Shown piece by piece: positions 3,585 through 64,000 of a stretch of 64,000 nucleotides of DNA. A program made the translations under genes and the position numbers. Source of the stretch: Auanema rhodensis (Eukaryota > Animalia > Nematoda); NCBI GenBank assembly GCA_964057225.1, contig OZ059899.1, forward strand, positions 7,068,001 through 7,132,000. The letters run 5' to 3'. Numbering within the stretch: the first letter of the stretch is position 1; the number at the start of each line of letters is the position of its first letter. The notes beneath the pieces were generated by a model. The model ran no database searches and was not told the DNA's origin. It worked only from the letters and a program-made list of their open reading frames with translations.

Positions 3585-3611
<27 letters not shown>
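3585..3611. repeat. (TA)n microsatellite
   Basis: Direct reading. Confidence 0.85.
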
Positions 3612-3620
<9 letters not shown>

Positions 3621-5154: not shown

Positions 5155-5169
5155 CTTTTGCTATTATAG
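5155..5169 (+). promoter_or_regulatory. 3' splice acceptor directly abutting the dve-1 ATG (probable SL trans-splice site, or acceptor for a non-coding 5' exon)
   Basis: A T-rich tract ending ...ctattatag|ATG at 5169/5170. No upstream coding exon is needed, since the protein starts at the conserved MFP N-terminus. Confidence 0.6.
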
Positions 5170-8100
5170 ATGTTCCCCGTACGGGTGGCCGTGGAAACGG
5201 TCCGTACGCAGAACTGTTTGACATGCGCCAGCGACGGCCATATCCTTATCGATACTTATGCCATTGTTTCTGGAACAACTTTACTGAATCAACTTGTTGA
5301 TACAGTTCTTTCTGCTCTTGGACATCCGCAGCTCGCATTGAATGCTAAAGGTACGAGTTTTTAATATCTTGTCTATATTAACCTATTGATATCAATATTT
5401 ATTATCAGAGTTAAATTTGTTATAATTTATATGCTAGAAGATGATATATCTTGTTCTTCAATCATAGTTTGCCCTGCTTTTTGTTATAATTCTCTGAGAT
5501 TGTTCTATGCTCTACTGTTTCTCATATATAATATTGACTTCGATCCGAGTATAGGCAACGAAAGCTTCCACAAAAAAAAAGTGAAAATGTATGTGAAGAA
5601 GTTACAAATCTTTGAACCGTTCCACTACATTTCGTTGTCAACTATTGCTATGCTTAGTTCGTTTCTAACTATTCGTCGCCCTCTTTTCATCAATTTACAT
5701 GGTACGGGGGGTGCTTGTCATCGTTATTCAATCTGATCATCATCCACTTGCCATAGCTGACAATTTTTACATGACGATTATAACGATGACGACAAGAAAC
5801 AGCAAAGACGGCGCTCATGATGATGTTGATGCTGATGATGCTGATGATGATGCTGATGATGATGATGACTATTGGAATCTTTTGCTTTCTACCATATTTG
5901 CCGAGATACTAGCTCAAATTCTAGGCATATTTCCTATTTTTTCGGCTTCTTATGTTATGATGTCTGTATGCGTCATATTTCAATCAGATTGACGACATCG
6001 TCAGCCCATCTAAACACAATGACAACTTCAACTTGACTTGCTCGATGACGGTATTGTCTTCTCATTCTATTAGCAGCATTGTCATCATTAGTATGTTGAT
6101 CTGCTCATAAACCGTCTTTTCCTCTATCAATAATTCATACATTCTTAGCTCTACCGATTAACAGATATTGCCATGTGATTCGGATCATTTTTGTTTTGTG
6201 AAAATGATAGAGACGAAAATCATTCTAAGTTTTCAATACTTTCTCCCTACCCAAATATATGTGAAGCTCAAATATACAGAATATAACTTATGAGAATAGA
6301 TTGTATGATGAAATGACGGTCCAAAAACAAATTTTAGCTGGTGGACTACTGATTATTGTGTGAAAATTGAGTCTTGTCTTCTCTTTGCTCTCTACTTTTC
6401 TCTTTATTCTTTCAGTTTTCCATTCATTTCTCTCACTTCTTTTCTTCCTTTTATGTCACACACCAATTTGCTGTTTACAAAACAAACAAATTGATTAATC
6501 ATTTAAGATATTAGCAATTTTTTCAATTTTTAGCCATATTAGTAGTCGTCTTCTTAAGTTGGAAAGAGAAGATTATTAAGTATTATTTAAAGTTTGTTGA
6601 AAAACTCATAAGACTTGGTCCTAAATGTTTTTGCATCATCATCTAATAATCTCAAAAGTTTTTATTTTTCTTTTCAAACCTGATCATCGCTTTCTTCATC
6701 ATCATCAACAGCAGCAGCAGCAACAGAAACAGCAACATGAAAACGATGATTACTTTTCTTCAGATTTCATTCCGTTTTCTCTTACAATTTTTATGGCTTC
6801 TGGACTGATCTTGCTATCAATGGCTGATTAGGTCAAACTAGATATCAGGTTATCATTTGATCCTGCCATCTATTTCATTGAAATTTTCATCGTTCTTCCC
6901 CCTCTAGTTCAAATAGAATGAAAGAGAAAACAACAGATAACTTGAGTAAGTCTTCTGATGATATGATTAGCTCTGTAGAACAATAGGATAGTCTATCTGA
7001 AGTAGAAAAATAGCATTAATGACATTTAATCATGTTCTGAAAACGATAGAGTTGTCGTCGGCACTGTATGAGTATAGTCCGATGATACCGACGACACTTA
7101 AGTAAGTTTTTGATGATCATCATCAAAGAGCTATCGAAAATCGAATATTACACCAATGTCTTTTGGCATGTCTCTTGAAGTCAGTTTCGTTGTCCCGGCT
7201 ATTGTTCCATCCAGTCTCTCAATCATCAAATCACGTGATATCATCTGTCAATTACAATCTCTAATTTGCCTTTTTTTGGCATAGTGAAAGCGATTAAGAT
7301 AGCTGTCATCATCATCATGTATACAAATAGTATACGAAGAAGACGTCGTTTTCGATAGTGAGCGAACGATAATCTTCTGTCTGGGACAGATTCATGCCAT
7401 CAGACGAGACTGGAACCGCCATCCATACAAATCCACCATAACAACAGGTTATATTGTTGTCGTTTAAGACTTCACAAGCCTCAAGACTATTGGTAAGAGC
7501 GAGACCGTCGGGGGTTAAGGATGACGAGATGAGATGGCATGTATAGATGATTGAGCGGAACAGAAAAGTAAAAGGAATGTTCGGCAATTGAGGGGGGATG
7601 GGGACTTGATGCTGTGTATGGTAAGGGGTTTTACGAGGGAATTGTCAAGTCTAAACTATGCCAGTATCTAAAGATTGAAGTCTGCATAGAAGGATTGTAC
7701 TGAAACTTTCATTAGCACTTTCTCTCTCTTAATCTACAAATTTATCGTTCAGCTTTTTGATTTTAGAATCGGATATGGTGCCAGTTGGTGTCAAACGCCC
7801 TTGCCATGTCCGATTATCCATGTGTCGTCGTCTTCAAATCATCTTCTTTCAGTCCTTTTCAGATTTTCTTTCTCTCTCTTTATAATATTTATCCTTAGCA
7901 TTTTCTTTTTTTTGTATTTCCTTTTACTTTCTTTTTCCTCTTATATTCTCTCTTTCTCTTTCTTTTCTTTCATCTTTCTTTCGTTTTCACTTGTTATAGC
8001 TTATTTTCTCTTAGCCGGATTTCAATGCGCCAAGGGCAGACAAGTGAAAGCTTGTTCCCGTTTTCACTGCGTAAGAATTGAAACACGTTCTTCCTTGAAA

Positions 8101-11100: not shown

Positions 11101-14100
11101 TTATTTATCGAATATCTAAAAGTTAAGAATACAACATCTTGCCCTGCAGATTCGATAACAATCTGCTTTGCTATGATCGTACTTTCAACAGTTTCAATAG
11201 AAAAGGACCACCAACATCAGTAAAATCCAGCTGTTCATTTGTGTTTGAATGGTGAGAAAAAAATGGGAAAATCACATTGTTTTTTCGGGAAAAAATGACA
11301 CAGTCTTGTTCATCTTCTGTTTTTTGCAGTTTTGTCGGTCTTTCCTGCTTCACAAATTTTTGGCTCTTTCAATACAAAAGATGTGTGAAAGAAGCCGAAG
11401 CCGACATTCAGATCGTCAAAAGTGTTGGAACCGATTGAACACAAGAAATATTTTGAATAGGTTGAATAGAGCGCATCATCGACATCATCACCGTTACTGT
11501 CATCATCATAGCCATCCATCTGGAGAAGCAATAGTCAGACGTTAAGGCAGCATCGTCATATTAGTGGAACCTTCTGTTCCTCACTCACACACACATTTTT
11601 TCATTTCTTTTCATTGCATTTGCAATTCTTCCCAATCTTCAGCTACTTCTTTTATGCTGATGGTGATCAAAGGATTGGAAACAGAAGAAGAAAGAAATCA
11701 GATCTGATTCAATGTATCAAATGAATTGTAAAGAATACGAGCTGTTGAACTTCTTCCATAGTTTCCAAAATGAAATTCTGTGCTATTACTGATCATCTTT
11801 TTTTGGATCTGAATTCTACACTTTCACGAACAAACTTCTGTCTGTTTTCTTTTCACAGACTCATACACATATTGTATTCATTGACGATGTGTCGAAGTAA
11901 ACGATGTATACGTGTACAGCATGTATGTATGTTCAGAATCTGGAGACAATGTAATCTGATGAGACAAAGTAGCACGAATGTCTCAAGACACAGGCTTCAT
12001 CGTTATTTTGTCAGCAGTTGGTGTAGTCAAGCAAACAGTGGCTTTTGATGAGCCGCTTTAAAGTTTGCTGATCATCCATAAAGCACAACGACAACGACGT
12101 CGAAGCTTTTCGATGTCTGTATTTTTGAAACCAACAATCGATAATCTTGAAACAAACTGTTAATCTATTTCATGTTATAATCGGAATTAATTTGAAAAAA
12201 GCCGTTATACTTACCCAGCTGTTAGTTTCGATCGTTAGCAAACTTTATGAAAATGAAACTTTTGTGGAGATGAGGATGGGGAATGCGACCGGAGCTACAT
12301 AAAGTCAGAGACAAATATAAATAAAAACAAAAATAATCATCATTATATCATATAAATTTATATAATTTAACTTAACTATATTATAATATTAATATCGATA
12401 TCAATATATTACATTTATTTGAATTAATTAATTATTTATATTATTTTTTTCAGGTCTTGTTCAAGTTAACAACTGGAAAGCTCTACCATTTGATCAAATT
12501 ACTGATAATCTAGAGGATACAGTTCACAGTCTATTTAAAGATATTGCCAATCAAATCACACTCCGAATACTTACTAAGCCGTGAGTTTTACTTTCAAGTT
12601 GAGAAAAAGATCTCAAAGGTTGTGACTTACTTCAAAATATTTTCCTGTTCATCCTTTACAAATACATTTGCTTGAAAAAAAACAAGAAAAATGCTATTCC
12701 TTTTCAAAATTGTCAACTTTATAACCAGCAAAACGTTCCTACTCTTTAAATACTTCATGTTCAAGTTTGTGTTCAATAGTTCCAGCTCAACCAGACATCT
12801 GTTTTTCTTTTCCATTTTGCTCATTTCGAAGTGTAAATTTGACAGACTGAGAAATGTAAGGTGACATTGAAAGAGAATTGTGAGAGTTTATCTGGTTGCT
12901 ACAGAAGACTCGTCAGCTCGTTCGTATCGTTCGACTTTTGTCCTGCTCAGCCGTCTGAATTTATGCTATGTCTCTGTGTATCTTCTATTGAAATACTTTG
13001 CACACCTTTTCTCTCTTTACTTCTTTCTCTCTTCTATATTCTGTTCGAAGGCTCCAAGCTTATCCAAACACATGTTCTGTTCTCTCATTCCATAGATTGT
13101 CCTCATGTGCTTTGAGCCCATCGTCTAAAGTTGACGAAGAAAAGAGGAAAGTTGTCGATCGCAACTCATGTAACTGCCTTTAGTATTTCTTATGGGTCTT
13201 CATAACCTTATCCCTCATGTTGTCTGTTCATTCGAAATCTCTTGTTGATACACAGTATTTCGACTATTTGCCAGTTCACGGAGACATGTTTGTATGACAG
13301 CTCTACTTGGTTGCCTTGTGTTCTATGAGCTCCATTTCTTCTTTCTTTCTCTACCTCTATATCATCTCTCTTTCTCTCTCTCTATTAGCTTGGGTTTTAT
13401 CGTTCTTTACATTCATGACTGTATCTGACTTGGAGAGGGGTGGGCAAAATATACGAGACAGATCTTTTCCACATCCCATTTGCTTGTCGAAGCCTCGTCC
13501 CGCCTCACTTACCGTAATCCCTTCATCGTCTGTGAAGCATAGCGCTGTGCTCCGTGTATTTAACGGATCAGGAGCTCAGAAAGCTCAGGTAGAAAGAGGA
13601 CAGGGACACACAAAAATTGAGAGATAGATTCGAAAACTGTGAACAGAAGTTAGGCTACATTATAATTTGAGGGACCAACTAGGTGAAATCTTCTGAGCTG
13701 GTGAATCATCCGATACGACATGGTCTTGTCTGATTCAACCTTTTATTATCTATACAACAGACCTATGTCTTATAGAACTATGGGAAGACATAGAGAAGAC
13801 AATATGTTCTGAGATCTGAAGCCAATAACAGCAATCATCAGTGTTATTGGCTGAATACGGAACATAGATCGTATGACAGTCATAATCATGTCTTGTCTCA
13901 TGGTGCAATTAAGCCAATTAGAGCGACATCATTCACTAGGATTTGGCTTAGAAATTTCTGAAATAAATACTATATAGTGTATAGTATATAGTATATAGTA
14001 TATAGTATATAATATAATTTATTGATTTAATATTTTTATTATTCCTTCTGAATCAAATTGAATTGGAAAAGTGGTGTCAAGAGATTGGGGGAATTGAAAA

Positions 14101-17100
14101 TAGTAGAGAAAAGAAAATAGAGGGAAAGAAGTTAAGACTAGATGAGTATGGATGTCTGTTTGACTAATAAACTATATCTGGCTCTTTCCTTTTCCATAAA
14201 ATTGAATAGATTGAGAGTAATAGATGATCTCATGGGCTCTTTACCTCTCTCTTTCTTTCTCTTACCCTCTCGCCTTTTTTTTACATATTTCAACACTTCT
14301 CTCACAAATAGATATCTCTCAATCTTTTCATTTTCTATTGAATCTAGGCATGTGAGTATGTGTACGTTGTCTCCAGGATATTGATCAGACAACGATTCCA
14401 TATGTATGTACATATAATCATCATCTCCATTCTCGCCTTTTCACCTTACGATGCAAGTGCTATTTGCCTTTTCCATCATCACATAAAGGCTGAGCAGAGC
14501 TGGATTTGCACACAGGGACAAAATCGTTCCAAAACCTCCTTATTCTCGTTTTCTCTCATTTCCTTTCTGCTTTTCGTCCTTTTAAGGTTAATATAATAGC
14601 AGGGTCTTGCAAGGTGATCGAGGGAAATTACTTGAGCTAAGAGGGGGGGATTTCAGTTGCTCGATGCGTTTTCTTAATATTTGGCTCACAGTCGGTGAAT
14701 CTTTAAAGCAAAGAAGACATAAAACGGTTTTAGTATTGATGCGTTACAAGCTTAGAATTTATCCAAAATCTTCTTCTTTTGTATATCGTTGTGTATTTGT
14801 TTCTGCAGTTATTAGATACAAAAGATGATGATAAAACACAACAGCGACTAACGACCTCAAAGAGCCAAAGTGTGCCTAACGGATAAAGTCAGGACGGCAG
14901 AACGACGACATCTTTTGTCGTCAAAGTATTGAAGTTGAATATTGTCAAAAATCAACCAGATAATGTGAATAGAAAGTATTCATTCAAGAAAAACTATAAA
15001 TGAAAAATAATTGAATGAAATTTCAAGCAACTAATCAATCCTAAGAGCGAAAAGTCAAAAAATTGCTTCGCTGCTTGCATAAACTTCCATTTTATCTTTC
15101 AAAACTTCTTTCAATTAGATAACAAAATTGTTTTGAATTAACAATAAATGTTGGAAACTTATTTTTTCAATTTTTAGGACCAGCACGGATTCAGCCAGTC
15201 AACAATGCATTAACGATCTCAAGCAACGTTTACTGCGAACAGCAGTCAGCAAGAATCCCAACATCCTTAATACAGTTGAAAATCAACAAATTAAGGTATT
15301 TATAAAGATAAACAGTAATTATATTAACAAAACATAATATTTTAAGGAAATTATTACTCAAATAATTGGTGGAGATGATCCAACTATGCTTAATCATGAT
15401 CAAATCAATGCTATCAATGATTGGATTGAATCACTTGATTTAGCTGATGAACGAAGGAGGTATGTTCTTCTTTATAATTATTATTCATATCGTTTTTACT
15501 AATTATATAACTATATTTAACTATATATTTCATAAACTGAAAAAAAATATATTTTCGACTAAGAAATAGAAATGAATTTCAAAAAGGGTTGAGATGTCTT
15601 CCAAAATTAATTATAACGATGTTGATGTAACTCTTCTCGTCATTTCTATTTTACTTCATTCCTTTTTTTTTGATAATTATCTCATGATGATCATGATTTA
15701 TCTATATTTCTCGTAATTTTGAAGTTTCATTTTCATTAATTTTTTCCTTTCTATTTTCTATTCTAGTCTCTCAAACAAAATGTTTTATGAGCGGATAATC
15801 TGGAGAGTACTTGATTGACTGACTGATTGACTTCATTTTTCCGTTTCAAAGATCATAAGAATTTTGAAAAAAAATAAGAAAAAAAGAAAAGAAATGCACA
15901 ACGACTAAGAGAATCCGATACTATAAAGAGTGATTGAGGAGAGCGAGAGAAAATGAAGGAAGGAGAGAGGAAAAACGAGTACGCGATTTAAGCTTTGTGA
16001 AAGAGATAAGCCCACGAAAGTCAAATCAACACAACCTTTTGTATTCCGTTTCGTTACTCTCTCTTCTTCTGCAGATTATCTCTAATCACTTTTCAATAGA
16101 GCTTTATCATCACAAGAAGAACATCACGGTTAATTAAGCAAAGAAATGTTGCATATACTAACTATATCTATATAGTTTATTCAATTTGTCCTCTTATATT
16201 GACCTTATAAAGGTACATATTCTTCTTAAATTCTTTCTCTTTTTAACTTTTGTTCCTTTTCTACCGTGTTTTCCATTTAAAATCTGGATCTCATTGATAT
16301 ACGGTAGACAGTTTCCGTTCTATACTCTTCTAGATGAGACCAGCTTGGCGCTTATTGGCTGTCTGTTATTCTATCAAAATACGACTCTCTCACATATCAA
16401 TACTCTTTAAAGCGATAGACAGAGAGATTCTTTAGCAGTTGGACGATTTTTCGACAACGACATTTTCCGGTTCTAATTCATCTGCTTTTTTCAATCCTTT
16501 GCTCACCAATTCAACTCCGCGGCTTGTAGATTTCACTCTCTATATTCAATCCGTTTGTTAATTCAAAAGTATTGAAAATCATATACATAAAAACATATAT
16601 TTAATTATAAATATAATAATTATATATAGTTAGTTGAGTATAAAGTTAAAAAATTAACTTTTTAAACGAATTTAATTTATTTTTGTCATCTACTTTGAGG
16701 GAAATTGATAGTTCAGCGTTTGCTGTCCAAAGGCGTTTTCATGCACTATTGGGGTAACCAGAAACCTTTCGTTATCTTCTCTTTTTTTCTCTCTATCCCT
16801 CTTTCTTTCTCTCTCTCCCACTCTCACTCTCTCTCTTTATATCTAATTATGAAGAAAAAAGAAAATCAAAAAGTAAACTCGTTCTTCTTCATGTGGATTA
16901 GTATCAATCATGAATACGAAATGCGTTTATTTCAATTATAAAGCAATAATTATTTTGAAATCATTGACAATAAGATTCACTATGGCATATATGATGCATC
17001 TTGTTGATGTGAAACGAGAACAGTAAGCTTCTTCTTGTTGTTTCCAAAAATTACATCAATTAGCTACAGAATCCTTTTGTATTGTGAAAGAACAACCATA

Positions 17101-17945: not shown

Positions 17946-20900
17946 AGAGGTAGGAAGTAAAGTAAACGAAAAAAAATAGGTTGAAAAGAGAGAGTAGATA
18001 GTACAGATCTATATTCATTTGAGCTGATAGCCTGATAAGCGAATCTGAATACATGAGAATATCATAATTCTATAGGAGAGTTGTAAGAAAAAAAATCAAA
18101 AGAGTTATATGATAGATAAAGAATAAAGAAGAGAAAAAGATTGAAAAAGAGAAATAAATGGACAACGATAATCGCATTATTCGTTTGTTCATAATAAACT
18201 TCAATACAAACTTAAGCCGATATGATATTCACATGATTTTGGACTCTTGTGTATCAAACAAACATCAATAGATCCTCTCTTCTGTATCATCCTCTTCCTC
18301 ATATTCATATATATTCATACGTTTTGAATTCATTCAAATCCACAAAAAAAAATTAAATAAAAACTAAAAATTGAGGGAACAAGGAATGAAAAGGGATTCA
18401 GATGAACTTTTTTACGTTTTTATAAAGAATTTATATAAAAAATTATTATAATTAATCGAATATAAATTCATAATATGTATATGAACTTTTATATTTCATA
18501 TGATTCATTATTCTAAAAAAGAAGAAAAGAAACTATCAAAGAATCAAAATCATATCTGATTCATATTTGTAAACTTTTAAAATGTTTTTAAACTATTTGA
18601 TTGAAGTAATCATAATTCAATTTTATTTCTTAGGGACTATACATTTAAATAAATTTATATATATATATATATATATAATTAGTAAAAAGACGATTGACGA
18701 AAACAGTTAAAATTACTAAATATTCTGCTTTTCAGCCCTGTCTCACAAGTTCGTTTTAATCACATGCTCGAAATTCCTCGACTTGAAAAATGGTTCAAAT
18801 CTGATCCAAATCCAAGTCGTCAAAAGCTCAATCATTACATAAGCACACTTAACAGCAGTCCTTACCGTAAAAATCAACAAAAGATTGGATATCAACAGGT
18901 AAATAATCTATTTTTTCAAATATTTCATGTTTATTAATTATTTTTAGATTTGCAATTGGTTCCAAAACCAACGTGCTAATAGACGTACTGTCTTTTCTCA
19001 AGCTCCACCACTTACTCAGGTTCGTATTAGAGTTCATTTTCAACTTTCCGCATATTTTCCCTAAAGCAAAGAACTTTTTTTGCAATGAGCATGGCTTTAT
19101 TAAGACCTTCTACTTAATTTATCTTTTCTTCAACCTTAATTTCCTTTTTAAATCTTTTAGATCCAAGCAAGTCTTCCTGCCCTTCTAGCTGAATACAGAC
19201 CGAAGATTGATTTTACTAATTTAATCGACAGTTGTCAGAAATCAACTGATGAAAGCATAGGCAGTGACTGGAAGGTAAATCATATGTTTCAACATCTTCT
19301 TCTTCTTCTTTTCCCTCTTATAGCTTTATCTATTTTCAATTTGTCCTTCAACAAATTTCTTTATAATTTAACCTTTTACTTCTAATTCTGACAGCTAAAT
19401 ATGGAAATCCTCCTATGCAAATTTTAAGATTAAGGACTGGAAATATTGCATATATCACTGATTTTGATATCAGAAATCATGTGATATGTATTCATAGAGA
19501 TATGTATATACATAAACACATAGTTAACCATAACTATTATGCTATGATTTGAAGCATAATATTGCCTTTAAACTAATATGTTGCATATTTAGTTGTCAAT
19601 CATCTTAATTTTCAATAATACCTATCAGCCCAGCTCTTTCTCCTTCATATAACATATTTATCGATGAAACATCTGAGTTCAGCTTTTCCAGGATATTCTT
19701 CGTGTGGATGGAGGATCTGATTCACCAAGTCCAGGAGATGATGAAATTCACAGCAATAGCGATGGAGCTAACGAATTCAAGCAGGTCAGCGGGGAGGTTA
19801 GTAACCCTCACAAACAAACAACAACTACTTTAAAAATACATTCAAAATAGATTATTAATCAATCTCAAATGTACTTTTTAAGAAAATCCAAAATATCTTT
19901 TCTCATCAATCTAGTAATCTACGGATTTTCCATTCTTTGCAATTGCCAATTGGCATTTTTGACCGATCTTATCTAAGCCTCGCCAGCATTCTGAGTCGGC
20001 TTGACCTTGTTCGGAAAAAATTTCAGTCAAAGAGGGGAAGGGGATATATATCGAATAGATGAAGGTTAATAAAGAGAAAATATATATAGAGAGAGAGTGA
20101 GAAAGAAAGAGAGTGAGAGAGAGAGAAATGCAACTGAGATTTAAAATTGAAAAGATGAATGTATGCAGTGAGAGTTGTGACTCTAACCAAAATGGCCATA
20201 CACGACTGGTTTTTTTCCCTTTTGAAAGCCACAAACAGATTTGTCCTTGCCTACCTTTTCTAAGTGAAGAAATATCGTTCTTCTGTTGCTATTTCGATGT
20301 TATCTTGGATTCAGTATAGCTCATCATGAGAGGATATAGAAGATTTTTTTTCATTTAAGTGAAGAATACAGAATGTTTAAATTGGAAAGCTTGACAGCCA
20401 TCAATCACAACACCTGTTTTTGGAATAGAAAAGAGAAAAAAAATGATTTTCATATAAAAGGGGCTAAATTGAGATAAACTATATAACTTTATAATATTTA
20501 GTTCATTTATACTTAATGGATTATAATGGATTACTTAAAAAGATAAAAGTAAAGATATTTCTTTTTAATAAGATTTTATTGTGATTTAGTTCAACATAGA
20601 TAGAAGTTAGATATAATTTAAAATTTTTCTTTAATAGAGTTCTTCTAATCCTTTATCCTATTAATCTTACACAATAGAAATTGGATCTATCTTCTTCTAT
20701 TCAAGACTTAACTAACTCAAATTAAATCTCGGAAAATAATTTTAAATTATATTGAAAAAGTATGTATATCTCAAGATATATCAAGAAATTGAAAAGCTAG
20801 ATAACTCATTGACTGAAAGAGAAGGGACTTTTGGAATGTTGAGCAAAAGAATACTTTAAATATTTGATAAAAATTCTTTAAACATTCGAAATAATAATAA

Positions 20901-21482
20901 TAATTAAGTTTATTGTTAGTTATATTCTGATTTTTAGGAATCAACTGCTTCCTCTCCTGATTTCTCCATGCATATTGGATCGAACTCTATAGGTAGCTCA
21001 TCACCTCGTCATGGAACTGATAGCCATGGCATACCTACTGGAACGTCGTCAGCTCCATCTAATCCAAATCATGGAATAGGATCAGGATGTAATTTATTTC
21101 AAATATAAAATATTTTTTATATAAATAATCTTTTAGCTCGATCACGTTTAATGTTCGATCCATTAACTGAGTTACCAATCTTGGAAAAATGGTTCGAAGA
21201 GAATCCACATCCAACCTGGATGCAGATTGATCAATATACATCAACACTTAATAGCTGTCCATATCGTGAGAACTATCCACATATTAGTCAGCATAACGTT
21301 AAGGTAATTTATATATTTCTTAATTATAATTTATAATTTTATATAATTAAATATTTTGAAAGAAATATGCTTAATAATTCTCAAATTCATTGTTTTTCTT
21401 TAAGATCTGGTTCAAAAATCGACGTGCCAAATGCAAACGGATGCAAACGGGAATGGAAAAGATGGAAAAAGTCTTTTTATGA
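5170..21482 (+). CDS. dve-1: DVE-1 (defective proventriculus / SATB-like) transcription factor with COMPASS domain and two atypical homeodomains; 458 or 462 aa
   Basis: Coding exons: 5170-5350, 12454-12580, 15178-15295, 15347-15459, 18736-18898, 18948-19019, 19161-19274, 19692-19784 (or -19796), 20938-21088, 21137-21303, 21405-21482. All introns are GT..AG with matching phases; total 1377 or 1389 nt. Translation includes [19 protein letters not shown]...[19 protein letters not shown] (COMPASS), [16 protein letters not shown]...[10 protein letters not shown] (HD1) and [33 protein letters not shown]...[14 protein letters not shown] (HD2). This closely matches C. elegans DVE-1 as I recall it. 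Confidence 0.96.
5817..5869. repeat. (GAT/GCT)n trinucleotide microsatellite in dve-1 intron 1
   Basis: atgatgatgttgatgctgatgatgctgatgatgatgctgatgatgatgatgac. Confidence 0.85.
13971..14010. repeat. 7-bp minisatellite (TATATAG), about 5 copies
   Basis: tatatagtgtatagtatatagtatatagtatatagtatat. Confidence 0.8.
17884..17942. repeat. Compound (AT)n(GA)n microsatellite in dve-1 intron 4
   Basis: Direct reading. Confidence 0.9.
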
Positions 21483-51800: not shown

Positions 51801-53302
51801 CCATTTCAATCTATTAATAAATCAAAAATTAATTATTCATCTATTTATAGAGTGAAGATATTCTTCGGCCAATTGCCTTCCGAGCTGTTACAAATCAAAC
51901 TGCTGAGGATTTTAAACTTCGACAATCTCAAGATATGCGAAATTTCGAACGACAAGTCATTCGAGGGTGAGCATTTTGGAAAACATTTCATGTTTTTCAA
52001 TGAATTCACATTGATTATATGTTTTATTTTTTCAGCGATGTTGTTAAGAGCACTCCATTTATTTGTAGTTCAAATAGTCAAATGCAGAGACCAAGACAAA
52101 TCTACCAACCATGTACCAGCTTTTCACCTCCGAATAAGCCAGTAGAAAATGAATATGATACAGTACCTGAATATTTGGAAAAAGAAAAATTCAGTGATTG
52201 TAAGATAATATTCAAAAATATTTTTAATTCTAATTTATGATTTTAGTTTGTTCAAGTGGCTCAGATTATGGATCATTTGTTCCTCCAAAGCTAACTTCAT
52301 CAATGGCTTCAAGTGGTACAGGCAGCAGTCATTTGAGTAGCCCTTCCGGAACTAACAAAGTTGGTTTTGTCATTATATTGCTTTTACTTACAAAATTTTG
52401 TATGAATTAAATGTAATAATATCTCCATTTAGAAGCCACTTGGACGTAGTTCATCAGGAATCCATATTACACCATCACCAAGCGATTCAGGCATTGTTGA
52501 TTTTGAGGTTGGAGCTTTATCACGATTGAGTACATATGTGTAACTTTCTTATTCTTAGGCTATCATGCGTGATAAAGAGAATGAGTTACGCGAAGTACGT
52601 AATACTATGGAACAAAATGAGGAAATAATCGTCAAGGTCTATCAAGAAAAGGAAAAGATCTGGAAAGAAGAGCTTGATCAACTTCGACAACGTCTTGCCG
52701 CTGCTGAGCGTGGCGAACACGGACTACGAACCCAGCTGGCGGGATGCCAACGTCAAACCGAGACCTTGTCCCGTTCAGTAGACGGTCTCCGAGACGAGAA
52801 AACAGGATTATTAAGAAAAGTAAGTATTAAATAAGTGTATTAGAAAATCAGAATGAAGATCTATTTTGAAATTTTATTTATAAAGAACAAACATTCAATA
52901 TTCAATCTTATAGTGTTTCCAATTGGAACGCGAATTGGGGTCCGTCAAGGCCGAGATGGATAAGCCACGAATCTGTGATGAATGCAAAAAACGTGAAAAA
53001 CCAATACCAGCACCTCGCCAGATAAAGGTAAAGATAACAGGCTATGAATGAACTCATAACATATCTTATTTATAGGATTCTGAGACAAGTATTCGAACAG
53101 AAGTGTCATCTTTACGTGAAGAAGTTGCAACTTTAAAAGAAGCTCTACATGAGCAGATTCATATGTTCACAGAAGAACGTAAGAAATGGGATGACCGTCA
53201 GGTAATTATTATAAGAACATTAATGAATAATATAATGAAGACTAAAATATTTGTTTTCAGAAAACCGGAATTTCTGAAGAGACTCGAGATCGATTAATCT
53301 GA
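28982..53302 (+). CDS. LZTS / ProSAPiP1 / N4BP3 (Fez1-family)-like coiled-coil protein, about 805 aa
   Basis: 22 phase-consistent exons: 28982-29028, 29083-29181, 29647-29751, 36509-36635, 38443-38499, 38730-38846, 39006-39092, 39195-39277, 40556-40639, 40718-40890, 40945-41053, 42190-42306, 50974-51101, 51149-51222, 51851-51966, 52036-52199, 52247-52359, 52433-52507, 52559-52819, 52914-53027, 53076-53201, 53261-53302 (2418 nt). LZTS-type motifs in order: PPPARITPHSG, ILRPIAFRAV, TPSPSDSG, DKENELREVRNTMEQNEEIIVKVYQEKEKIWKEEL, FTEERKKW. The 3' exons are secure. Linkage of the 5' low-complexity exons rests on splice phase only. Confidence 0.78.
33169..33266 (+). CDS. Probable alternative first coding exon of the LZTS-like gene
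   Basis: An ATG-initiated open stretch, MDNIGKGSNHLHHHKTTTIFRAFELTNSNEKL, ends in AA|gtaagt. This is a consensus donor in phase 2, which matches the phase of the exon at 36509. Confidence 0.55.
36989..37048. repeat. (AG)~30 microsatellite
   Basis: Direct reading. Confidence 0.9.
39650..39691. repeat. (CT)~21 microsatellite
   Basis: Direct reading. Confidence 0.9.
45802..45897. repeat. (CT)n microsatellite of about 96 bp with TAT interruptions
   Basis: Direct reading. The first two interruptions are 20 nt apart. Confidence 0.9.
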
Positions 53303-54060
53303 AGATGTGATTTTTGATCAAACGCTACATCTAACAACCTTGTTACTTTTAATTGTTTTATTCTTGTAGTCAGCTTCACGTGATTCCACTTTTTTCACGT
53401 AGCCATTACCTTTCCACAGATATCCTGGTGTACATAGTAGCTGAAAAGTCTGCTTTTCTATTTTCTACTAAACTTCCTGAAGTTCTCAAAGAAAATTCGT
53501 TTACATAGCTGACCGGACATGTACAGGTTAATCTGATAATACTACTTGGATTCCGGCTTAGCTGAAACTCGTTCGTCGTTTTTTTCATTGCTATTCGGGC
53601 TCTTTGAAATGCTCATCGGCGCTCATCTTCCACTTAGCTATCATGCTTCCTGTTTTTGTTGGAGCTCGCATCAGAGCTTCGTCATACAGTCAGTCCATTG
53701 TCGTCACATCTCTTCACTACTCGTTCAACGTGTCAGTTTTCTTTCTCAACCTTGTTGTATCTGAAACATACTCCTTATGTACTTTGAGTTTCTTCAAGTT
53801 TTCACGTTAACGTGAAATAATGGTAATAAGCTCAGGAAGCTAAACTAACTTCTTGTTATATAGCCATAATTTGAAAAATATCGAAGTCATGATGCTTTAA
53901 CAATAAGAACGTTGTTAAATGATTACAACTTATTCAGATTTTTGTTTATATATTATATTCTTTTATTTTATTTGATGAAATCCCGATTTATAACAATTTG
54001 AGTTTTTTTTTCTCAAAAGCTTTTTTTTTTGCAAACTTTATACAAGAAAGATATGTTTAC

Positions 54061-54066
54061 AATAAA
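54061..54066 (+). terminator. Putative polyadenylation signal of the LZTS-like gene
   Basis: First AATAAA found after the stop at 53302, followed by T/GT-rich sequence. Confidence 0.55.
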
Positions 54067-54158
54067 TATTTATATTATGTTTGGTTTTTAAATTTTTACA
54101 AATGATTAATCAATACAATGAGTGAACCGTAGAAATATTTATATAAGTATAGTTTTAA

Positions 54159-54762
54159 CTATAAATTCCATCCATAACGACGTCTAGTTCCCATGTCTCG
54201 TAATGATTCTTCGTATGCTCTACGCAATTGATCTTCTTCTGATAATCCACCAGTATATTGGCTAAAACTTATTATCAATTCATATATATAAATTTTGAAT
54301 TTGTACCTGAAACGGTTTCCATGTCCTCCTGTAGTTGCTCCTCGTCCAGAAAATGCGCTTCCATAACGTTCATAGGAATCAGAACCACCTTCTTCAAAGG
54401 GTGGTGCACTTGGTGTAGCACGACCTCTTGTATCAGAAACTAAAAAGTTGATTTTCCTGCATTCTTTGACTGAAAACCTAATACCAGTAAAGTCTGTTAA
54501 CAATTTGGTGATTAATTGCAGAGGACCATAAGTGTATAAAAGTCCTGTGAGTATTCCAGCTAAATGACCGACAAATGAAGCATTTGGAGTAACTAACTAA
54601 AACAAAAACGTTTGTTTTATTTTTATGAAAACCAACTCACCTCAATAAGGAATAACTCAGCCCAACAAGCATACTTGGAGGGAATAGGAAGCCATCCGAA
54701 AAGATTAGAATGACTGTATGGGAAATAATGATTCATAAGAACCTTCAAAGCAAATAGAACAC
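54159..54762 (-). CDS. RHBDL4/RHBDD1-like rhomboid intramembrane protease, 3' four exons only (5' exons not found in the window)
   Basis: Exons 54762-54641, 54596-54485, 54439-54307, 54261-54159. Translation: (G)VLFALKVLMNHY...ACWAELFLIELVTPNASFVGHLAGILTGLLY...YTGGLSEEDQLRRAYEESLRD. This matches RHBDD1 (GFSGVLFALKV, ACWVEL, SFAGHLAGILVGL, and the UIM GLSEEEQLERALQASL) as I recall it. The frame is intact and the catalytic His is retained. Confidence 0.88.
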
Positions 54763-54873
54763 CTATAATTAGAAAATATTAAAAATATTCTGAAAGTTAA
54801 TGATTAATTAGTAAATATTTTTGGTGATGTTGAAGTTCCCATATAGACGCGCAAGTATATATTAGCGATTGAA

Positions 54874-54879
54874 TTTATT
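54874..54879 (-). terminator. Putative polyadenylation signal of the GCPII-like gene
   Basis: tttatt on + reads AATAAA on -, about 190 nt after the stop at 55067. Confidence 0.6.
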
Positions 54880-55066
54880 GTATCACAGATATTTTTATAT
54901 ATAAATGATAAGAGATCTCATTTGACCGAGATGATTAATACTAATTATTAATACAAGAAGTGCAAGATAATTCAGAGTTAAATGAGACAATACTATGAAA
55001 ATCTATAAGGCATGGCTATACATTGAATATAAATATAGAGGCAGAATTTCGAACCCGTGACATTAA

Positions 55067-58000
55067 CTAGTCAAAACTAAGTATTTTAATAGCGCTTTCA
55101 ATTGCAAATTGTAGACGCGTAAAGCTCATTACGAAGTTATGTATGGCAGAAGTAGAATTATCCTTTTGTTCCAAAAAATCGAAACATGGATCTAGCATAC
55201 AAGCAAATGAATTAACATGTGAAGGATGTCTGGAAGGTGAATACAGTATATGCTTATATATTGGTTGCTGGAAAGCATGTGCATCCAACATAGATCTCTC
55301 AAGTAATATAAGTCGGCTGTTTAACTGTTCAACGCGACCGACAGAAACAGACGACAACCCTGTTGAAATATCCTGAATAAACAGATGCTTTTTCTGAAAA
55401 GCTGAAAAAAATATGCTACCTGTATTTCAAGTTGAAAAGCGGTAGCTACATGTAAAAGACGCCGAAGGGCATGCTTGACACCGTTTACTTTTTCAGAATA
55501 TCGAGGTACATGCTGGGTAATATTCAAATAAGAAATTTGAGTTTCAGCTTTGTGAAAAAGTGATGATATTGATTGAGCAAAGTGTAACGGATGAAAAGGA
55601 ATAATCTAAATATACGGAGAATATACGATGTAACAAGAGTTTATGAAGAAATACCAAACGATTAGATAGTTGATGAACAATTTCCATCCAAAGTTGGCCC
55701 ATTGTCAGCATAGAGGAGAAGTTAGGATCCATTAAATTTTCGACTGTCCAAAACGTTTCGTACATAGTATGATAGAGGGCATATGACATTCCAGGTAAAG
55801 ACTCCATTTTTAAATCAGCAGATGGTACACCAGCAAAAGTAATGAATCTCTGAAATATTCATATAAGTTATCTTAAATTGATTTTAAAGATCACCTGATA
55901 ATCTGAGCCTCCTGTTGGTAACCCGATTTCAGGCATTGTTCGATCTCCAGAAAATGGGCTTTTACCGCGATAGAAAAGCCAAGAATCCAATAGTGAGTTT
56001 CGAGCATGAGATAATTCATGGGCGTTTAGTTGAGGTACTTTTTCAGCTGAATCCACGATAAGACGATAAAGGAGCGGAACAGCCTTCACATCAAGCGTCG
56101 TATTACCAGATATGTGATCGACATTAATGTAGGCAACAGCTCTTGAAAAATAATATTATTTAATAAAAATTGCAAGCATATATATGTATACCGAGTGTTT
56201 AAAACAGATTGCATTTCTTCAATCCATTCTGTTGATCCTATCAAACCAAACTCTTCCGCGTCCCAGTGACAGAATACAATTGATCGACGTGGAGCATTAT
56301 TATCATAATACTACAATTAATTAAATTAGGTGGAAAATAATAAGAAAAATTTACCTGAGAAGCGACCCGAGCCATTTCAAGTTGGGTAGCAGTACCCGAT
56401 AGGGGATCAATAGCACCCTGAAAAGTACTTATTGTGCAAGAAATAGGTAAGCTACTCACGCTTCCCCAAGCATCTACATGATTTCCTACAAGAACCCATC
56501 TGTCTGGCTCTTCTTTTCCTCTCAATGTAGCAATTATGTTAGTAATAGTTCGTTTGGCGTTTCGAGACCGAACGTTCATTCGAAAAACTTGGCTTCCTGT
56601 AAGACGATACGGGGATTTCAAGCCACCTCTCCAAGCAGACACCTGAATATGAGCAGTAAAAAATGCTTAAATTATTAAAAAAACCTTTATTACTGGCCCA
56701 TTAAGATATGACATTATTCGTTCAGCATCATCATAACCGATTGGTGTGACAGGGAGAGAATTTAGATAGCCTTTATAAACAAATTGTATTGGCAAGTTGC
56801 AGTAAACATTATACCTTTTCTTGCAACAGATTCTTGAGTTTCAGAACGATAGACATATGGCAGAGATGGAAAGAGTGGAGTCAAAGGATCACCATGTGTT
56901 GCGAGAACAGAACCTCTCTGAGCATCAGTTCCCGGCAAAAACACATCATCAGGAAATGTCTTAAAGTTTTATCTGATTAGAAACCTGATAGAAGTATCCT
57001 ACCCTATTTTCATTAGCATTCGTATAATGCATTGGATCACTAAAAAGAATAACACCAGCAGCACCATGTCGTTTAGCTTCTTTCACTTTTTCCGATCTTG
57101 ATATTCCTCCATATCTGATCAAAGCAATAGCTCCAGATACATCAATAGACCACTAAAATATGAATATCGGTGTCCAGCTAAACAATGAATATATCTTACT
57201 GATTTTAATTCCTTATAATCTTCAGCCATTCCATAATTGCAATAAACTATGCGGCTTTCTACTGACCCATTGCCTGAGTAAGCATTCCACCAGATTGCTG
57301 ATCGTGGATCTGCTTGCTGAAAGAAAAACTTTATTGATGACAAATATCAAAATATTGTACCTCTTTAGATGCTTCTATTGGACCTAATTTCACTCCATAT
57401 CCATGACTAACTGTCCTCCAATTGTTGTCTTCATCGCGAGTTTCAATTGAATTTGGACGATTAAAATCAGGATAATTCAGCAGTACAGTATAGTTATAAA
57501 TTTTCACATTAAGTCCCATACTTTCATACTAGAAAAGCAAACAATATCAATGAACATAAAAACTATTATACCTCAGCGGCAATTGTACGCATCAAAACTG
57601 AATTATCATTAAGACCAGCTATGTGATTATTTCGCGACATCCACTTCAGATTACTTCTAATGCGAGCAGGATCAAAAAGTCTTTGTAATTGTTCGGACGA
57701 TTCTTCCAACTTAAAGCATATTATTCTAAATATACACTGATAAAAAACGGGAAACCTTTTTCTGGTCTTCATATAATCGTTTCTCATAAACGTTTTCTTC
57801 ATTGCGTTGCCGACAAAAGGAAACTTCTTGTCTTAAACGTGCTAGTGCGATCATAAGAAGTAAAACGAATATGCTTAGTAGAACTATAAAAATAGATGCA
57901 AGAAATAGAGGAATCCATTGATATTTATCGAATATTTTATGCTTCCTGAAACAATACAATAAATATTAATTAGATGCTTAGAATCGTACCTATATTTCAG

Positions 58001-58126
58001 TAGAGAATCACTCGATGATCGAGAAAATCGAGATGGGCTACTGCTCATACTGGATGATTCAGTAGAATTTAATAGGCTATCGTTCACCGAACAAACGTCG
58101 ACCGTTGACGAATCCATTTTACTCAT
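55067..58126 (-). CDS. M28B metallopeptidase, glutamate carboxypeptidase II / NAALADase-like type II membrane protein, about 809 aa
   Basis: 15 exons: 58126-57990, 57945-57756, 57709-57572, 57528-57361, 57316-57200, 57152-57003, 56959-56815, 56770-56685, 56642-56460, 56417-56355, 56310-56192, 56141-55895, 55849-55655, 55605-55420, 55372-55067 (2430 nt, intact). It has an N-terminal TM helix ([26 protein letters not shown]) and a PA domain ([32 protein letters not shown]). Zn and catalytic motifs: [40 protein letters not shown]. The C-terminus is a TfR-like dimerisation region (KHILYSPS). Confidence 0.95.
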
Positions 58127-61100
58127 TGTAATCAAATTGAAAAATGATTTTCATCTTAAAAAACGCAAACTCTCTGTTTTTTATTGTTTAAATGAATGAG
58201 ATCGCAGATAGGATTAGTCATTTCAAAACTCAGATTAAATTAAAAGAAATATGAAAACATCAAAACAATAAGAGAAACGATTCTCTATCAAAGTATCAGA
58301 GGTGAAGAGCAAAAGAACAACATATAAAATTTCCAATGTGTCTGAGCATAATTTTCGATAACCAGCTACAAGAGAAATCAGAAGAAAAGAAGAAGCAATA
58401 CGAAAGCCAATTGTGTGCTTTGTTTCTAGAACATACAATAAGGTGAAAACACTAATAATTATTATAAAAGTGAAAATGACATAAAAATATTATTCAATTC
58501 TATTAAGATTTTACGATGCGAAAATATCCTAGCTAGAACTTCATCATATTGTAATATGAAGCACAAACTCAGCTTAGCAAAGTGGCAGTTGAAAAATTTA
58601 ATGAACCGGCTGTATATAATACAGTTTAGAAGAAATTAAAGAGACAAATAATTGAATAGATTCAGATTATAGTCTTTCTGGAAATCTAGAAGCAAGAAAA
58701 AACACGGTCATAATAAGATGCTGATGTCCACAACGATCTCGCGCCCCTTGTCGTTTGAAACAATGTTTGCATATGCTTGTAATACATTCGGAAGACCGGC
58801 TAGCACACGGAAAAGCCGAAGAAATATTGTTTGATTATGGGAGAGGGTAGAAAATGTCCAGTCCCATGAAAATCCCAGATTCTGATTCGAGAACGGAGCA
58901 AAGAGTCAGCAGATTTTCAATTTCAATTTTTAATTCGATAAGCAGTAAAACAGATAGTGGATAAACATCCACAAAATATGCATAAAAAAAGCTGGGAGCG
59001 ATACAAATAGTAGTATGATGTAATTGAAAGATGATATAAATCTGCGGAACTGCATGGAATGGTAAAATGAATAGTACGACCACTCAGCTGGATTCTATAT
59101 AAGTGATTATATATTGCTTTTACAACTTTCCGATTCAGCATTAATATCACAATATGATTAAATAACTGCATAGCTAGATTATATTCGAGAGTAAATTCAG
59201 AATTGAAAAAAACATAACAAACAATTAGTTTTTTACAGCCAATAATGAGATAGCTCTCTTGTAAACTTCGTACATAGAAGGCGTCCTATGCTAATTAGCA
59301 TAGAACGAGGAAACGAATGGTAATTAAAGCTGTCGACATCGTCATAGTATATTCTTTTGCTTAACTTACAACGACTTCAGTTACAATATTTGAATCAGAA
59401 CAACTTCATCATTATGATCATCTGAACAAATATGTATCCGATTGGCCTTTCCCAAATAGTTGATGACAGCACGTATTTGACATTTGAGAAAAAAGCCGAA
59501 AGCCTAGTTAAGTTAACACACCTTTCTTACGTTTGAAGATGAGATCTATCTTTTTCGTAAGGTTTTCTCTCTGCCTCTCTCATAGAAATACACACAAAGT
59601 GTGAGTAAGCCGAAAAATTGACATCGAAATATATTACATATATTCTTATATTAAACAGGGCAAACATTATAAGCATAAAAAGCCGCCTTTAAAAGGCTCA
59701 GACCACCAGAAATGAAAATGTTAATGTGTCATCGTGTACAGGAAAAGAAAACATATGCTATGAAAACTTTCGAATCGACAATCATCTTTTTGATTTGAAT
59801 AGTTTAGCTCAGCTCTTGCATAGCAAAGGATAGCCCGACCATATGGGAAGGGAGAATAACGACACGAGAAATTATGATTAGAAGGGAGCATGAAGATGCT
59901 CAAGAGGATGTTTCTGAACAAAATATCCATCTCGAACATTCGAGTAAGTACGGAGTGACATATTGTTAGACAGCATAATTTGCATAAAGCTTGCAGTTTC
60001 AAATATGATGACCAGAAATAATTAAGAAATACATCAAGTAAGATCTATAAAAGTAGAACTATGCATATCATTTTCAAATAAAAAATAGGAGTAAGATAGT
60101 TTTCAACTATATTTTATGTATAAGAAGCTTATACTTTAGTAAGGTGAAAAGAGAGACACTTTTCATTTACCAACAATATGTTAGCAATATTTTCAGTCAT
60201 AAACATCTTTCCTTAAGATAACATGTTAAAGAAGCATAACTTCACTTGAAAATATCGCTTTCAGTATAATCGCATTCAGATATTAACAATGGAAATTTTC
60301 ATAAAAATATTGCAGTATACAACAGAGCAAACGTTATACTTTCAAAAGTCTTAGAAACTTTGAGGCTGTGAGTGTAACAACAGAATTGGTAGGTGTTATA
60401 GAATATGGATAAAGCCACGAAAGCATTTCTTTGTCTTTTCAAAACCAGTAAGAATCGAAATTTCAAATTGAGATGCATAGGAGGCTATAGCAAGAAATAA
60501 GAACGAAAACTAATGCAAAGTTGAACAGATACATGAAAAAGTGGCAAAGCAATGAAATTCAAAATCAGCCTATCGAAAACCCTATGTATCATCCTTTTAA
60601 AAAAACTAGCCAATGTAATGGTAAACTAACAAGGCGATATGTACGAAAAAGTCACTCGTAGGTGACAAACTGCCCTTTAGTGAGTAGATATATAGTTAAA
60701 AGAAGTATTATTTAGAATTGTATTCTCAATCAACCTCTTCTCATATAAGTTCTCACATTGATTATGAGAAGATGAGTTCTATCAATAGCGTGCAAGTTGA
60801 CAAGCGTAGATGAAGTGGACTGCACATACGGTCCCATATTACCTTATGTAATTACGTAACGTAACCCGCACATAGTGTGAACACCACATATTATTATATC
60901 GTAATATACAACACTATATATGGGTTATATGAACAAGACGAAGTAAGAACAGAACGTTAAACTTAAATCATATGGAACTGCTAAGAGATCACAAAAGAGC
61001 AACGATGGCTTAAACTAATAACGTCCGACGGGAAAAAAGCAAGACATTTTTTTCGTCGGAGATCATCAAAATAATGCCAAGAATGTCCCTGCCCAAGTCC

Positions 61101-64000
61101 ATAAATCTAGAGAAAGTAGTCTTTCTGCAAAAGACGTAGTTGAGTTGGGTTGTCATAGGAAAAAGTTTGAGCAAGTTATTAAGGAGAGATAGAGAGACCC
61201 AGTTCATGCAAAAAAAACTTAACGAAAAGTACTTTAGGCATAAATTAGCAAAAAATATTCTTATACTCTCAAGAAAAACAATGAAACCAAGGACAAAAGA
61301 AGATTGTTCAACGAGGTTAACGTGAAATTATTACTATGCGAGGCGCTAAAAACCAGTAAGTATGAGTGCTACATAAAAATATAATTACGCCGGCATTATA
61401 GAAATTCAGTTTTTATTCAAATCCTTCGGAAAAACATAGTTTTGAATTATATTGAAGGTTACGAAATAATATTTGAGCTGAATAGTTTGAACTGCAGATC
61501 GGTTTTCGGATGTGCTTGGTCAAAGAGGCTTCGGAACATAGCAACCGAAACAACTAAACCGATCAACCTCAAAACGATGGTAATAAAAATCCGGCTACAA
61601 GAGGAAGAACGTATGTGTTAATGAGAGGTTCATTGATGCGCACTAAAGATAATCAAAGTTTGTCTAAGACATTAATCTTATAACCTCTTATTGAAACAAC
61701 ATGAAGAAACAATAAAGGAGCGTAAACTTAAAGAATGATATTTAAAAAATTTACACAAACTGCCAAATTAGATAATCGAAACTATGACTTTTTTAAGAAA
61801 AAAATAAGTGCAAAGTCGGCAAGATTAAAACATGAACAGCGTCTTTAACGCACAATGTTTTCGTCATTTAATTTTCATTATAATAATGAGTAGACATATA
61901 AAGCTGGAAAATGATAACGGAACATAAAAACCAAACATAAAACGAAGAATAATCATTTATAGTTCGAAGAGGGTAGTCTTGTTCAGGTTAGGTGAGAAGC
62001 TTCTGTGAGAAGTGAGGTGCTATAACCGAATTATAACCCTTTTAATCCATTTGAAGCATTTTGACAGTCGTGCGAGTGGCCGTTATTAAACGAACCGGGT
62101 CTTGACACAGAAGCAGCCACAACCACCCCTTTCCCCTCATATAGGCATACACATATAATCATCACTGAGTGGTGACAGCTGTATGCAAATCGTAGGACAA
62201 ATATTGGCATAACTATGCAATATCCTTATATGAATTCGATTTAAGTCATACGATTACATAATTAAAATAATGTTAGTTATGAATAGATCGTGTCCTCAAA
62301 GTGGAGAAAAAGGTGAAGAAAAATTGAAATTCGCTGTTGATTTAAGCGGAAATCATAAAGTGGATACATGTAATAGATATGGTTACATCTTCTTTAATGT
62401 CTGACAGCACTCATCGAGACTAGCATGATCATTTTACATATTTTGGAATAATTTGATATCAAAATTTAAAAAAAAACGTGAAAAAATTCAATTCAAGTTT
62501 GATAAGTCAAAGGAAACGTCATGAGCATGAGGTTAGCATGAGAAAACAGTACTCGCTTCAAGGCCTGAATATCGGACACATATGAGAAGTCAATTTTACC
62601 ATATGTTCCAGAAGGACAAACAGCAATGTGAATGACAATAAACACCACAGTCTTTCTGAACAATACCATTGATAGAAAACTATAATATCTAGGTAACACT
62701 CAACAGATGGAAAAAAGAATATCTTTTGTTTCCTAAGTAGTTATTGCACGATACATAACCTAAGGGGAATCAAACCGGATATGAAAAAGCGTGAAGAACT
62801 ACGAAATTTTCAAAATTTTCGCTACTTTCAGAAGTTCGAGCGTCGAAAATGCCATTAATCGTAATTCCATCTCTTCATTCATGTCTAGCCTTCTCTAGAT
62901 ACGAAAATCTCAGTCCCAAAAGGGAGATACATCAAAGTCCTAACAATAAAACGCAAGCACACTTCATCAATAAAACTGCTCAGCATATCATGGTCATGAT
63001 ATATTACAATCAACTTTTTCTGCAGTATGGTCGCATGCAAATGTGATTGATATTTAAAGAGTCGTCAGAATATATTAGAATAGTATTAACTTGAATCGAA
63101 CATCTTTTGTTAATATTCGAAAGCTTGTTAGCGTATTTACTACGCTTACACACAGAAGTCTCATAAAAGATTATGATGAATTGCAACAGAATAAGTGACA
63201 CCTGAGATGCGATGCAATCCCATGGCTCTAGTGGGCTTGTTCTTCATTACTTCAACTATCCCGAATGCACGAGCATTACTACATGATCATTGAAATTACA
63301 ACCGACTGATAGGTCCGACAACTTATCACAAACTTATGGGTGACAACGATATGATGATGTTACAGGTGAAATATTAACGGAACAGGCGGTATAAACGAAT
63401 AGAAAAGAAGATATATATATATATCTATAATACAGCAAGCGGCAAGCACAAAGGTGCTTATTGCCAAATTCAAGCCAGCTAATGAACCCTAATTAATAAA
63501 TGTTATAAAGTATCTGATAGGGTAACCGCAAAACACTTGGGTTAGAACGGGCGTAACAATAATATGCGAAAAGAGAAATGTTTTAATTCAAAGACAATGT
63601 CCTTCCGAGTTTACAATTTCCAAACATGCTTGCTGAGAAATAATATACATCTCAGCCAAACCGCAATCCCAGAAAGCCAGATTATTAATATTGTTTATAA
63701 ACTATCTTGAATTATATCGAGAGTAAATCTCAAGGGTTAAGATATACATGAAAAATACCAAATGAGAATTCAATATTTAGGCTAAATGTCATGTTGAGCG
63801 CAAATCTATCTTTCTTACAGGCACTTTATAATGCCACAGATATCTTCATTTATTCAAGTAAAGCTCAAGATTATTCTTACATTTGATTAAATGAGCAAAG
63901 CGGACACCGAGGAAACTAATTTAAATGCGTTCAAGTAGGTGGTATAAGTATTTGGAACACCAGATGCTCTAATCAAGCACAAAATTCTTAAAGGAATAAG

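Follow-up and report, generated by a model that had tools for sequence, protein, structure and literature searches.

How can a gene be intact when another gene occupies the place of its 5' half? This question is raised by a 64,000-nt stretch of genomic DNA from the nematode Auanema rhodensis (assembly GCA_964057225.1, contig OZ059899.1, positions 7,068,001 to 7,132,000), which carries the 3' exons of a RHBDD1/RHBDL4-type rhomboid protease gene and, directly upstream in the same orientation, a gene encoding an M28B peptidase. The whole 64,000-nt stretch is called the window; all coordinates refer to it, and both genes are located on the minus strand. A first-pass annotation of the sequence had proposed that an intron of more than 9 kb hosts a same-strand nested gene, with a rearrangement or a mis-assembly as alternatives. 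An RNA join at the 3' border of the intron and two corresponding nests in the genus Pristionchus now speak for this proposal. We therefore assign a probability of about 0.88 to the explanation that the rhomboid gene is intact and expressed, that an old intron following the codons for the GFS residues of its catalytic motif has grown to more than 9.2 kb, and that this intron holds a complete M28B gene in the same orientation.

The rhomboid exons and their messenger

The last four exons of the rhomboid gene are located at 54763-54641, 54596-54485, 54439-54307, and 54261-54159 (-); they are separated by introns of the GT-AG type, their frames are open, and together they encode the C-terminal 156 amino acids. 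The first of them (54641-54763) reads GVLFALKVLMNHYFPYSHSNLFGWLPIPSKYACWAELFLIE. It begins in phase 1 within the final Gly codon of the GxSG motif, here GFSG, after the acceptor aattatAG (AG at 54764-54763) and 303 nt past the stop codon of the M28B gene. Upstream of this exon, a start codon is absent and an in-frame stop codon is found at 18 nt. The acceptor and its phase had been assigned correctly in the first-pass annotation, and junctions at this site were found in four sequencing runs; the first base belonging to the exon had to be restated as 54762, or as 54763 if the shared G is counted. The 42 amino acids encoded by the exon were 71-76% identical to residues ~153-193 of filarial RHBDD1-type proteins, both by protein search and by tblastn. 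The protein search matched 51 proteins, the best with 73-76% identity to residues ~153-193 of proteins of 296-314 amino acids which carry PF01694 and whose close relatives bear the name rhomboid-related protein 4.

RNA evidence was obtained from assembled contigs of four public runs belonging to one study; the label of these runs as RNA is a guess, and splicing in the contigs shows that RNA is present. In each of the four runs, one contig covers 54081-54261, 54307-54439, 54485-54596, and 54641-54763 with exact junctions. Past 54763, these contigs continue for at least 255 letters that match nothing in 54000-59900; since contig records of unequal length gave an identical value of 255, this number probably represents a ceiling and has to be read as a lower bound. 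Arithmetic on contig records of 1011 and 957 letters gives ~457-462 upstream letters. As GFSG occupies residues 150-153 in the relative from Loa loa, ~460 letters suffice for an N-terminal half of ~150 residues.

The portion of the upstream messenger sequence that was read comprises its last 30 letters; the region encoding the transmembrane segments (TM) 1-3 and the HxxxN motif lies beyond 64000. In the reading direction of the minus strand, the 30 letters are TTTACAAGTCAATGTGCTGTTGGATTTTCT and encode FTSQCAVGFS, after which the exon in the window gives G-VLFALKVL. CAVGFS and the G from the window together form GFSG; the messenger hence contains the catalytic Ser of GxSG in TM4, in the same form as in Loa loa (NQCAVGFSGVLFALKVL). 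The junction at 54762 that was to be expected for a nested arrangement is therefore present, with the acceptor joined to an upstream exon coding for FTSQCAVGFS. Since the acceptor is joined to GFS-coding sequence, the messenger is that of a full rhomboid and not of a relic: ordinary splicing joins 54763 to a coding exon of considerable length and not to a 22-letter leader, and the rhomboid gene is not broken.

The exon at 54485-54596 (-), reading TPNASFVGHLAGILTGLLY, was assigned by Pfam and by tblastn to relatives as the region of the catalytic His in TM6. The corresponding motif GHLxG is present as ASFVGHLAGILTGLLY, read as GHLAG. Pfam scans of both genes were run exon by exon, and the match of this exon to the Rhomboid profile (positions 118-138 of 143, E 0.0076) stays under the gathering score owing to the small size of the exon. 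The next exon, at 54307-54439 (-), encodes a poorly conserved cytoplasmic linker, and its joints 54261/54307 and 54439/54485 were found in four runs. Both introns adjoining it (54262-54306 and 54440-54484) have a length of 45 nt, a multiple of three, and are free of stop codons, and an open reading frame at 54159-54503 spans both; retention of either would therefore merely add 15 residues to the linker. The last exon extends from 54261 to 54081 (-), with coding sequence at 54261-54162, a stop codon at 54161-54159, and a 3' untranslated region (UTR) to ~54081; RNA contigs end at 54079-54130. It carries EEDQLRRAYEESLRD and the C-terminus RRRYGWNL. On visual inspection, the former agrees with the UIM consensus (acidic run, hydrophobic residue, xxAxxxSxx, acidic), and it is kept in relatives; a Pfam scan of the 33-amino-acid exon yielded no match. 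With GHLAG present, open frames, and a UIM-like sequence, the exons are as free of decay as had been stated in the first-pass annotation.

Two further observations concern the surroundings of these exons. A near-consensus nematode acceptor, TTTCAG, is located at 54795-54790 (-), 27 nt before the acceptor in use, which is the weaker of the two; TTTCAG was unused in any contig and could serve a minor or leader-spliced form. Beyond the 3' end of the rhomboid gene, a gene for a coiled-coil-like protein (52500-53300, +) begins at a distance of ~0.8 kb and is convergent with it.

The M28B peptidase gene

The gene within the host intron (55067-58126, -) has 15 exons and encodes a protein of 809 amino acids of the glutamate carboxypeptidase II/transferrin-receptor-like type. 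Its coding sequence of 2430 nt runs from an ATG at 58126 to a TAG at 55069-55067; all 14 introns are of the GT-AG type with a length of 42-50 nt, and every exon frame is open by running phase. The domain order PA, Peptidase_M28, TFR_dimer was confirmed, with E values of 2.5e-10 for PA (exon 57152-57003), 3e-07 and 3.1e-06 for Peptidase_M28 (exons ~56642-56194), and 6.7e-08 for TFR_dimer (last exon). A polyadenylation signal AATAAA is located at 54874-54879 (-), and the host acceptor follows after ~110 nt.

RNA contigs of 2.6-2.7 kb with fourteen spliced junctions were found for this gene. Their 3' ends lie at 54902, 54813, and 54779, and one contig extends unspliced to 54734. At the 5' side, a UTR is located at 58127-58161 (-); the contigs end at 58155-58161 and contain no extra letters that could not be placed, therefore no rhomboid first exon or leader is present on them. 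The M28B gene is intact and expressed. Frames, Pfam matches, and contigs agree with its earlier description as a complete 15-exon gene in the orientation of the rhomboid gene, with its own ATG and AATAAA.

From the last exon through the 3' UTR to 54779, the peptidase contigs follow the assembly with zero letter differences. Furthermore, a contig from one run (X1; depth 9.4) covers 54734-55371, passes the AATAAA, and crosses the rhomboid acceptor in unspliced form, again without a mismatch to the assembly. This contig represents either host pre-mRNA or read-through from the peptidase gene.

Extent and content of the host intron

The visible part of the host intron, 54764-64000 (-), has a length of at least 9,237 nt and contains the whole M28B gene, with the donor exon beyond 64000. 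Several searches for the exon encoding the catalytic Ser were carried out. The 30 letters preceding the junction gave no match on either strand of the window with up to three mismatches, and all of their sub-words of 12 to 20 letters were absent from the window; hence, a tiny last upstream exon is not hiding there. No rhomboid GxSG motif was found in the six frames of the window. Using tblastn with 11 full-length relatives and E values up to 10, the window was matched only from about residue 150 onward. Weak tblastn matches to T-rich DNA at 58.8-63.7 kb were rejected, as they were at chance level and not colinear. The motif scan, tblastn, and both word searches thus agree with the earlier statement that an exon coding for GFS-G is missing up to 64000. 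Because the window lacks the upstream exon, this intron must exceed 9,237 nt, in a neighbourhood where introns measure 42-50 nt.

Outside the window, the 30 letters were not found in metagenome contigs of the JGI. A full-length or N-terminal rhomboid of the species itself was absent from the protein collection, in which the best match to the exon in the window showed 76-81% identity.

In the part of the intron upstream of the guest (58162-64000, -), no gene, RNA family, tRNA, or sizeable repeat was detectable, and RNA depth was 0-3.7. Run X1 showed thin RNA cover at 58.1-59.5 kb. On the minus strand, the sequence from 58.2 to 64 kb is rich in T (T 0.388, A 0.277), as had been noted before, and a T-rich sense strand is also found in the host introns of Pristionchus.

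The nest in other nematodes

Relatives were identified by the search with the 42-amino-acid exon and by a word search with the Loa loa protein, and their gene loci were then looked up. Five species possess compact rhomboid genes without a guest: Loa loa (3.1 kb), Mesorhabditis belari (2.3 kb), Dracunculus medinensis (3.0 kb), Diploscapter pachys (4.8 kb), and Steinernema hermaphroditum (1.2 kb). The intron after GFS was mapped in three of these genes; Loa loa and Diploscapter have ~130 nt at this position, Mesorhabditis belari ~440 nt. Its presence in all three indicates that the position is old.

The synteny to be expected of a true nest was found in two species of Pristionchus. The rhomboid gene of Pristionchus fissidentatus (GCA_036245785.1, BTSY01000006.1) has a size of 12.2 kb and encloses a same-strand gene for a protein of 787 amino acids with PA, Peptidase_M28, and TFR_dimer; that of Pristionchus mayeri (GCA_036245805.1, BTRK01000001.1) has a size of 9.8 kb and encloses a same-strand guest of the same kind. 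In both, the guest is flanked by an exon ending with SSQCAVGFS and an exon starting with GVIFALKVL, which are 10.5 kb (P. fissidentatus) and 8.1 kb (P. mayeri) apart. The peptidase gene and the rhomboid 3' exons in the window are colinear with both loci, and translated identity of the peptidases is ~50-53%. Host family, guest family, and orientation are alike, and the host intron follows GFS in phase 1, with 8-10.5 kb in Pristionchus. The guest of P. mayeri ends ~320 nt before the host acceptor as compared to 303 nt in the window, whereas ~1.6 kb lie between guest end and acceptor in P. fissidentatus. The donor is located 5.2 kb (P. fissidentatus) and 4.5 kb (P. mayeri) upstream of the peptidase start, as compared to more than 5.9 kb to the end of the window here. 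Judged from these sequences, the shared guest, intron, and orientation would be hard to explain other than by one ancestral nesting event.

Non-coding similarity was not detected between the intron in the window and the Pristionchus introns. The two Pristionchus host introns share a block of 31 nt with 100% identity upstream of the guest (~14538-14568 and ~13281-13311 of the two retrieved loci), around which several blocks of 68-75% identity are found. This 31-nt block may have a role in the control of either guest or host.

In Steinernema hermaphroditum (CM059621.1), an M28B gene is located on the opposite strand 7.5 kb downstream of the compact rhomboid gene (18758-21239 and 3588-6217 of the retrieved locus). 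Its similarity to the peptidase in the window equals that of the Pristionchus guests, which hints that rhomboid and M28B genes could have been neighbours before the nesting arose. In addition, COG6 adjoins the rhomboid gene in both Steinernema hermaphroditum and Loa loa; this neighbourhood with COG6 and M28B may represent an old linkage which predates the nesting. Two protein models, one from Plectus sambesii (171 amino acids) and one from a run assembly (195 amino acids), are of the rhomboid type up to CAVGFS(G), then continue with unrelated residues, and thus break at the same intron; the Plectus model ends within this intron. Plectus may have another long intron at the site after GFS.

Alternative explanations

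One alternative is a misjoin or a strain-specific rearrangement, in which the 5' exons of the rhomboid gene are in reality located next to 54763 or on another scaffold, with the peptidase gene misplaced by the assembly; their absence from the window would fit. However, RNA-derived contigs from four libraries agree with the assembly letter by letter, beginning in the last peptidase exon and reaching or crossing the acceptor (54734-55371), and these unbroken contigs argue against a misjoin near 54800, where no break was seen. Moreover, gene order and orientation are identical in two Pristionchus genomes that were assembled independently, so that a misassembly here is very unlikely. Conservation and unbroken contigs thus leave little room for the rearrangement and mis-assembly that had been considered initially. 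A rhomboid gene which is truly split, with each half transcribed on its own and the two pre-mRNAs linked by trans-splicing, would find agreement only in the distance of the donor exon, more than 9.2 kb away or elsewhere. We regard it as extremely improbable: the Pristionchus halves lie on one strand around the guest at a distance of 8-10.5 kb, which ordinary cis-splicing explains; ordinary intron sequence precedes the acceptor and is crossed by an unspliced contig; and nothing at this locus requires a second promoter.

The two genes could also be linked at the level of transcription. In an operon-like arrangement, cleavage after the AATAAA would allow the acceptor to receive a spliced leader, giving a serine-less half-rhomboid with the UIM beside the full-length form. 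The ~110 nt from AATAAA (54874) to acceptor (54764) are typical of nematode intercistronic regions, and RNA cover continues beyond the polyadenylation signal to the acceptor. Nevertheless, this arrangement appears quite unlikely, since in all four runs the sole loose end at 54763 was the long GFS-coding sequence and not a 22-letter leader, although contigs drop rare variants and a minor form may exist; furthermore, the spacing is not kept in P. fissidentatus (~1.6 kb), and the product would lack the catalytic Ser as well as a start codon before the Met in KVLMNHY. Alternatively, one transcript from the rhomboid promoter may give rise to either messenger by alternative or trans-splicing, as for cha-1/unc-17. 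The nest is conserved, and in every run the two messengers have comparable contig depths (15.2/14.4, 28.5/32.9, 12.5/10.6, and 15.8/11.9), although contig depth is a poor measure of expression. Against such a shared promoter, every letter of the peptidase contigs is accounted for by the genome as far as their ends at 58155-58161, and a leader exon is missing from them; we consider a shared promoter as improbable as a misjoin.

Four points weigh against an intact rhomboid gene with a nested guest. The search, which covered the window to 64000, did not reveal the donor exon or any further 5' exon of the rhomboid gene; the contigs provide neither strand nor transcript ends nor rare isoforms; the rhomboid exons in the window resemble those of Pristionchus no more than those of other nematodes; and Pristionchus has a GC content of 45%, as compared to 32% here. 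Because of the latter two points, the shared nest rests on gene order and not on a known close kinship. The rhomboid exons are not especially close to any of the listed nematodes. We nevertheless prefer a nest that is real but ordinary, that is, neither a broken gene nor an assembly error.

Proposed mechanism

Two separate spliced messengers, one of the host and one of the guest, were seen among the RNA contigs. The 3' boundary of the nest is given by the acceptor at 54763, which is joined to an exon absent from the 9.2 kb upstream; for the 5' boundary, we infer from Pristionchus that the 5' rhomboid exons lie upstream on the same strand. Host transcription would start from a promoter beyond 64000 and traverse the peptidase gene in full, together with its AATAAA. 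The donor after GFS (exon end GGATTTTCTG, then GT expected) would then be paired with the acceptor at 54763, thereby skipping 15 peptidase exons and 14 internal acceptors. For the guest, a separate promoter within the intron is most likely, as it has its own 5' end at ~58155-58161 and its own polyadenylation signal.

Beyond this ordinary nest, the pair might form a regulatory unit under selection. Cleavage at the polyadenylation site of the guest, ~110 nt before the acceptor, would compete with host splicing and set both outputs in opposition, or would feed a leader-trans-spliced, serine-less half with the UIM. We consider such a unit unlikely.

Comparison with known nested genes

For annotation, the locus matters because automated prediction is prone to yield a headless half-rhomboid or to overlook the gene; the rhomboid models of Pristionchus are marked partial. 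With regard to transcription, an RNA-supported guest with many exons and its own polyadenylation signal would have to be read through and skipped by the host transcript. Its conservation between distant nematodes makes the nest usable as a natural test case of how polymerase and spliceosome deal with same-strand guests.

In worm, nested overlaps are the favoured kind of gene overlap, same-strand overlaps are under-represented, and most overlaps are species-specific (PMC2330155). In mammals, more than one tenth of genes are nested, and both orientations are nearly equal in frequency (PMC11694760). As in these animal pairs of host and nested gene (PMC2330155; PMC11694760), the guest described here would be located wholly in one intron, and the host intron is unusually long; in contrast to the pattern reported for worm (PMC2330155), the pair is of the same-strand type and is kept between distant genera.

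At the mouse locus H13/Mcts2, where interference of host and guest is studied, transcription of the guest causes the host to be polyadenylated early, an effect under the control of DNA methylation and imprinting (PMC13309782). There, as here, the guest is active in an intron of the host, and the same question arises as to how host transcription passes an internal gene and its polyadenylation site. H13 also encodes an intramembrane protease. Mcts2 is a retrogene, whereas the guest described here, known from sequence and contigs, has 15 exons. The cha-1/unc-17 locus of Caenorhabditis elegans likewise contains a gene in an intron of another gene on the same strand, and this pair shares a first exon and a promoter. 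While the leader exon is shared in cha-1/unc-17, the peptidase contigs at the locus described here lack a shared leader. The rhomboid/M28B pair, which is already present in the Pristionchus annotations, is a further conserved example of same-strand nesting and opens no new category.

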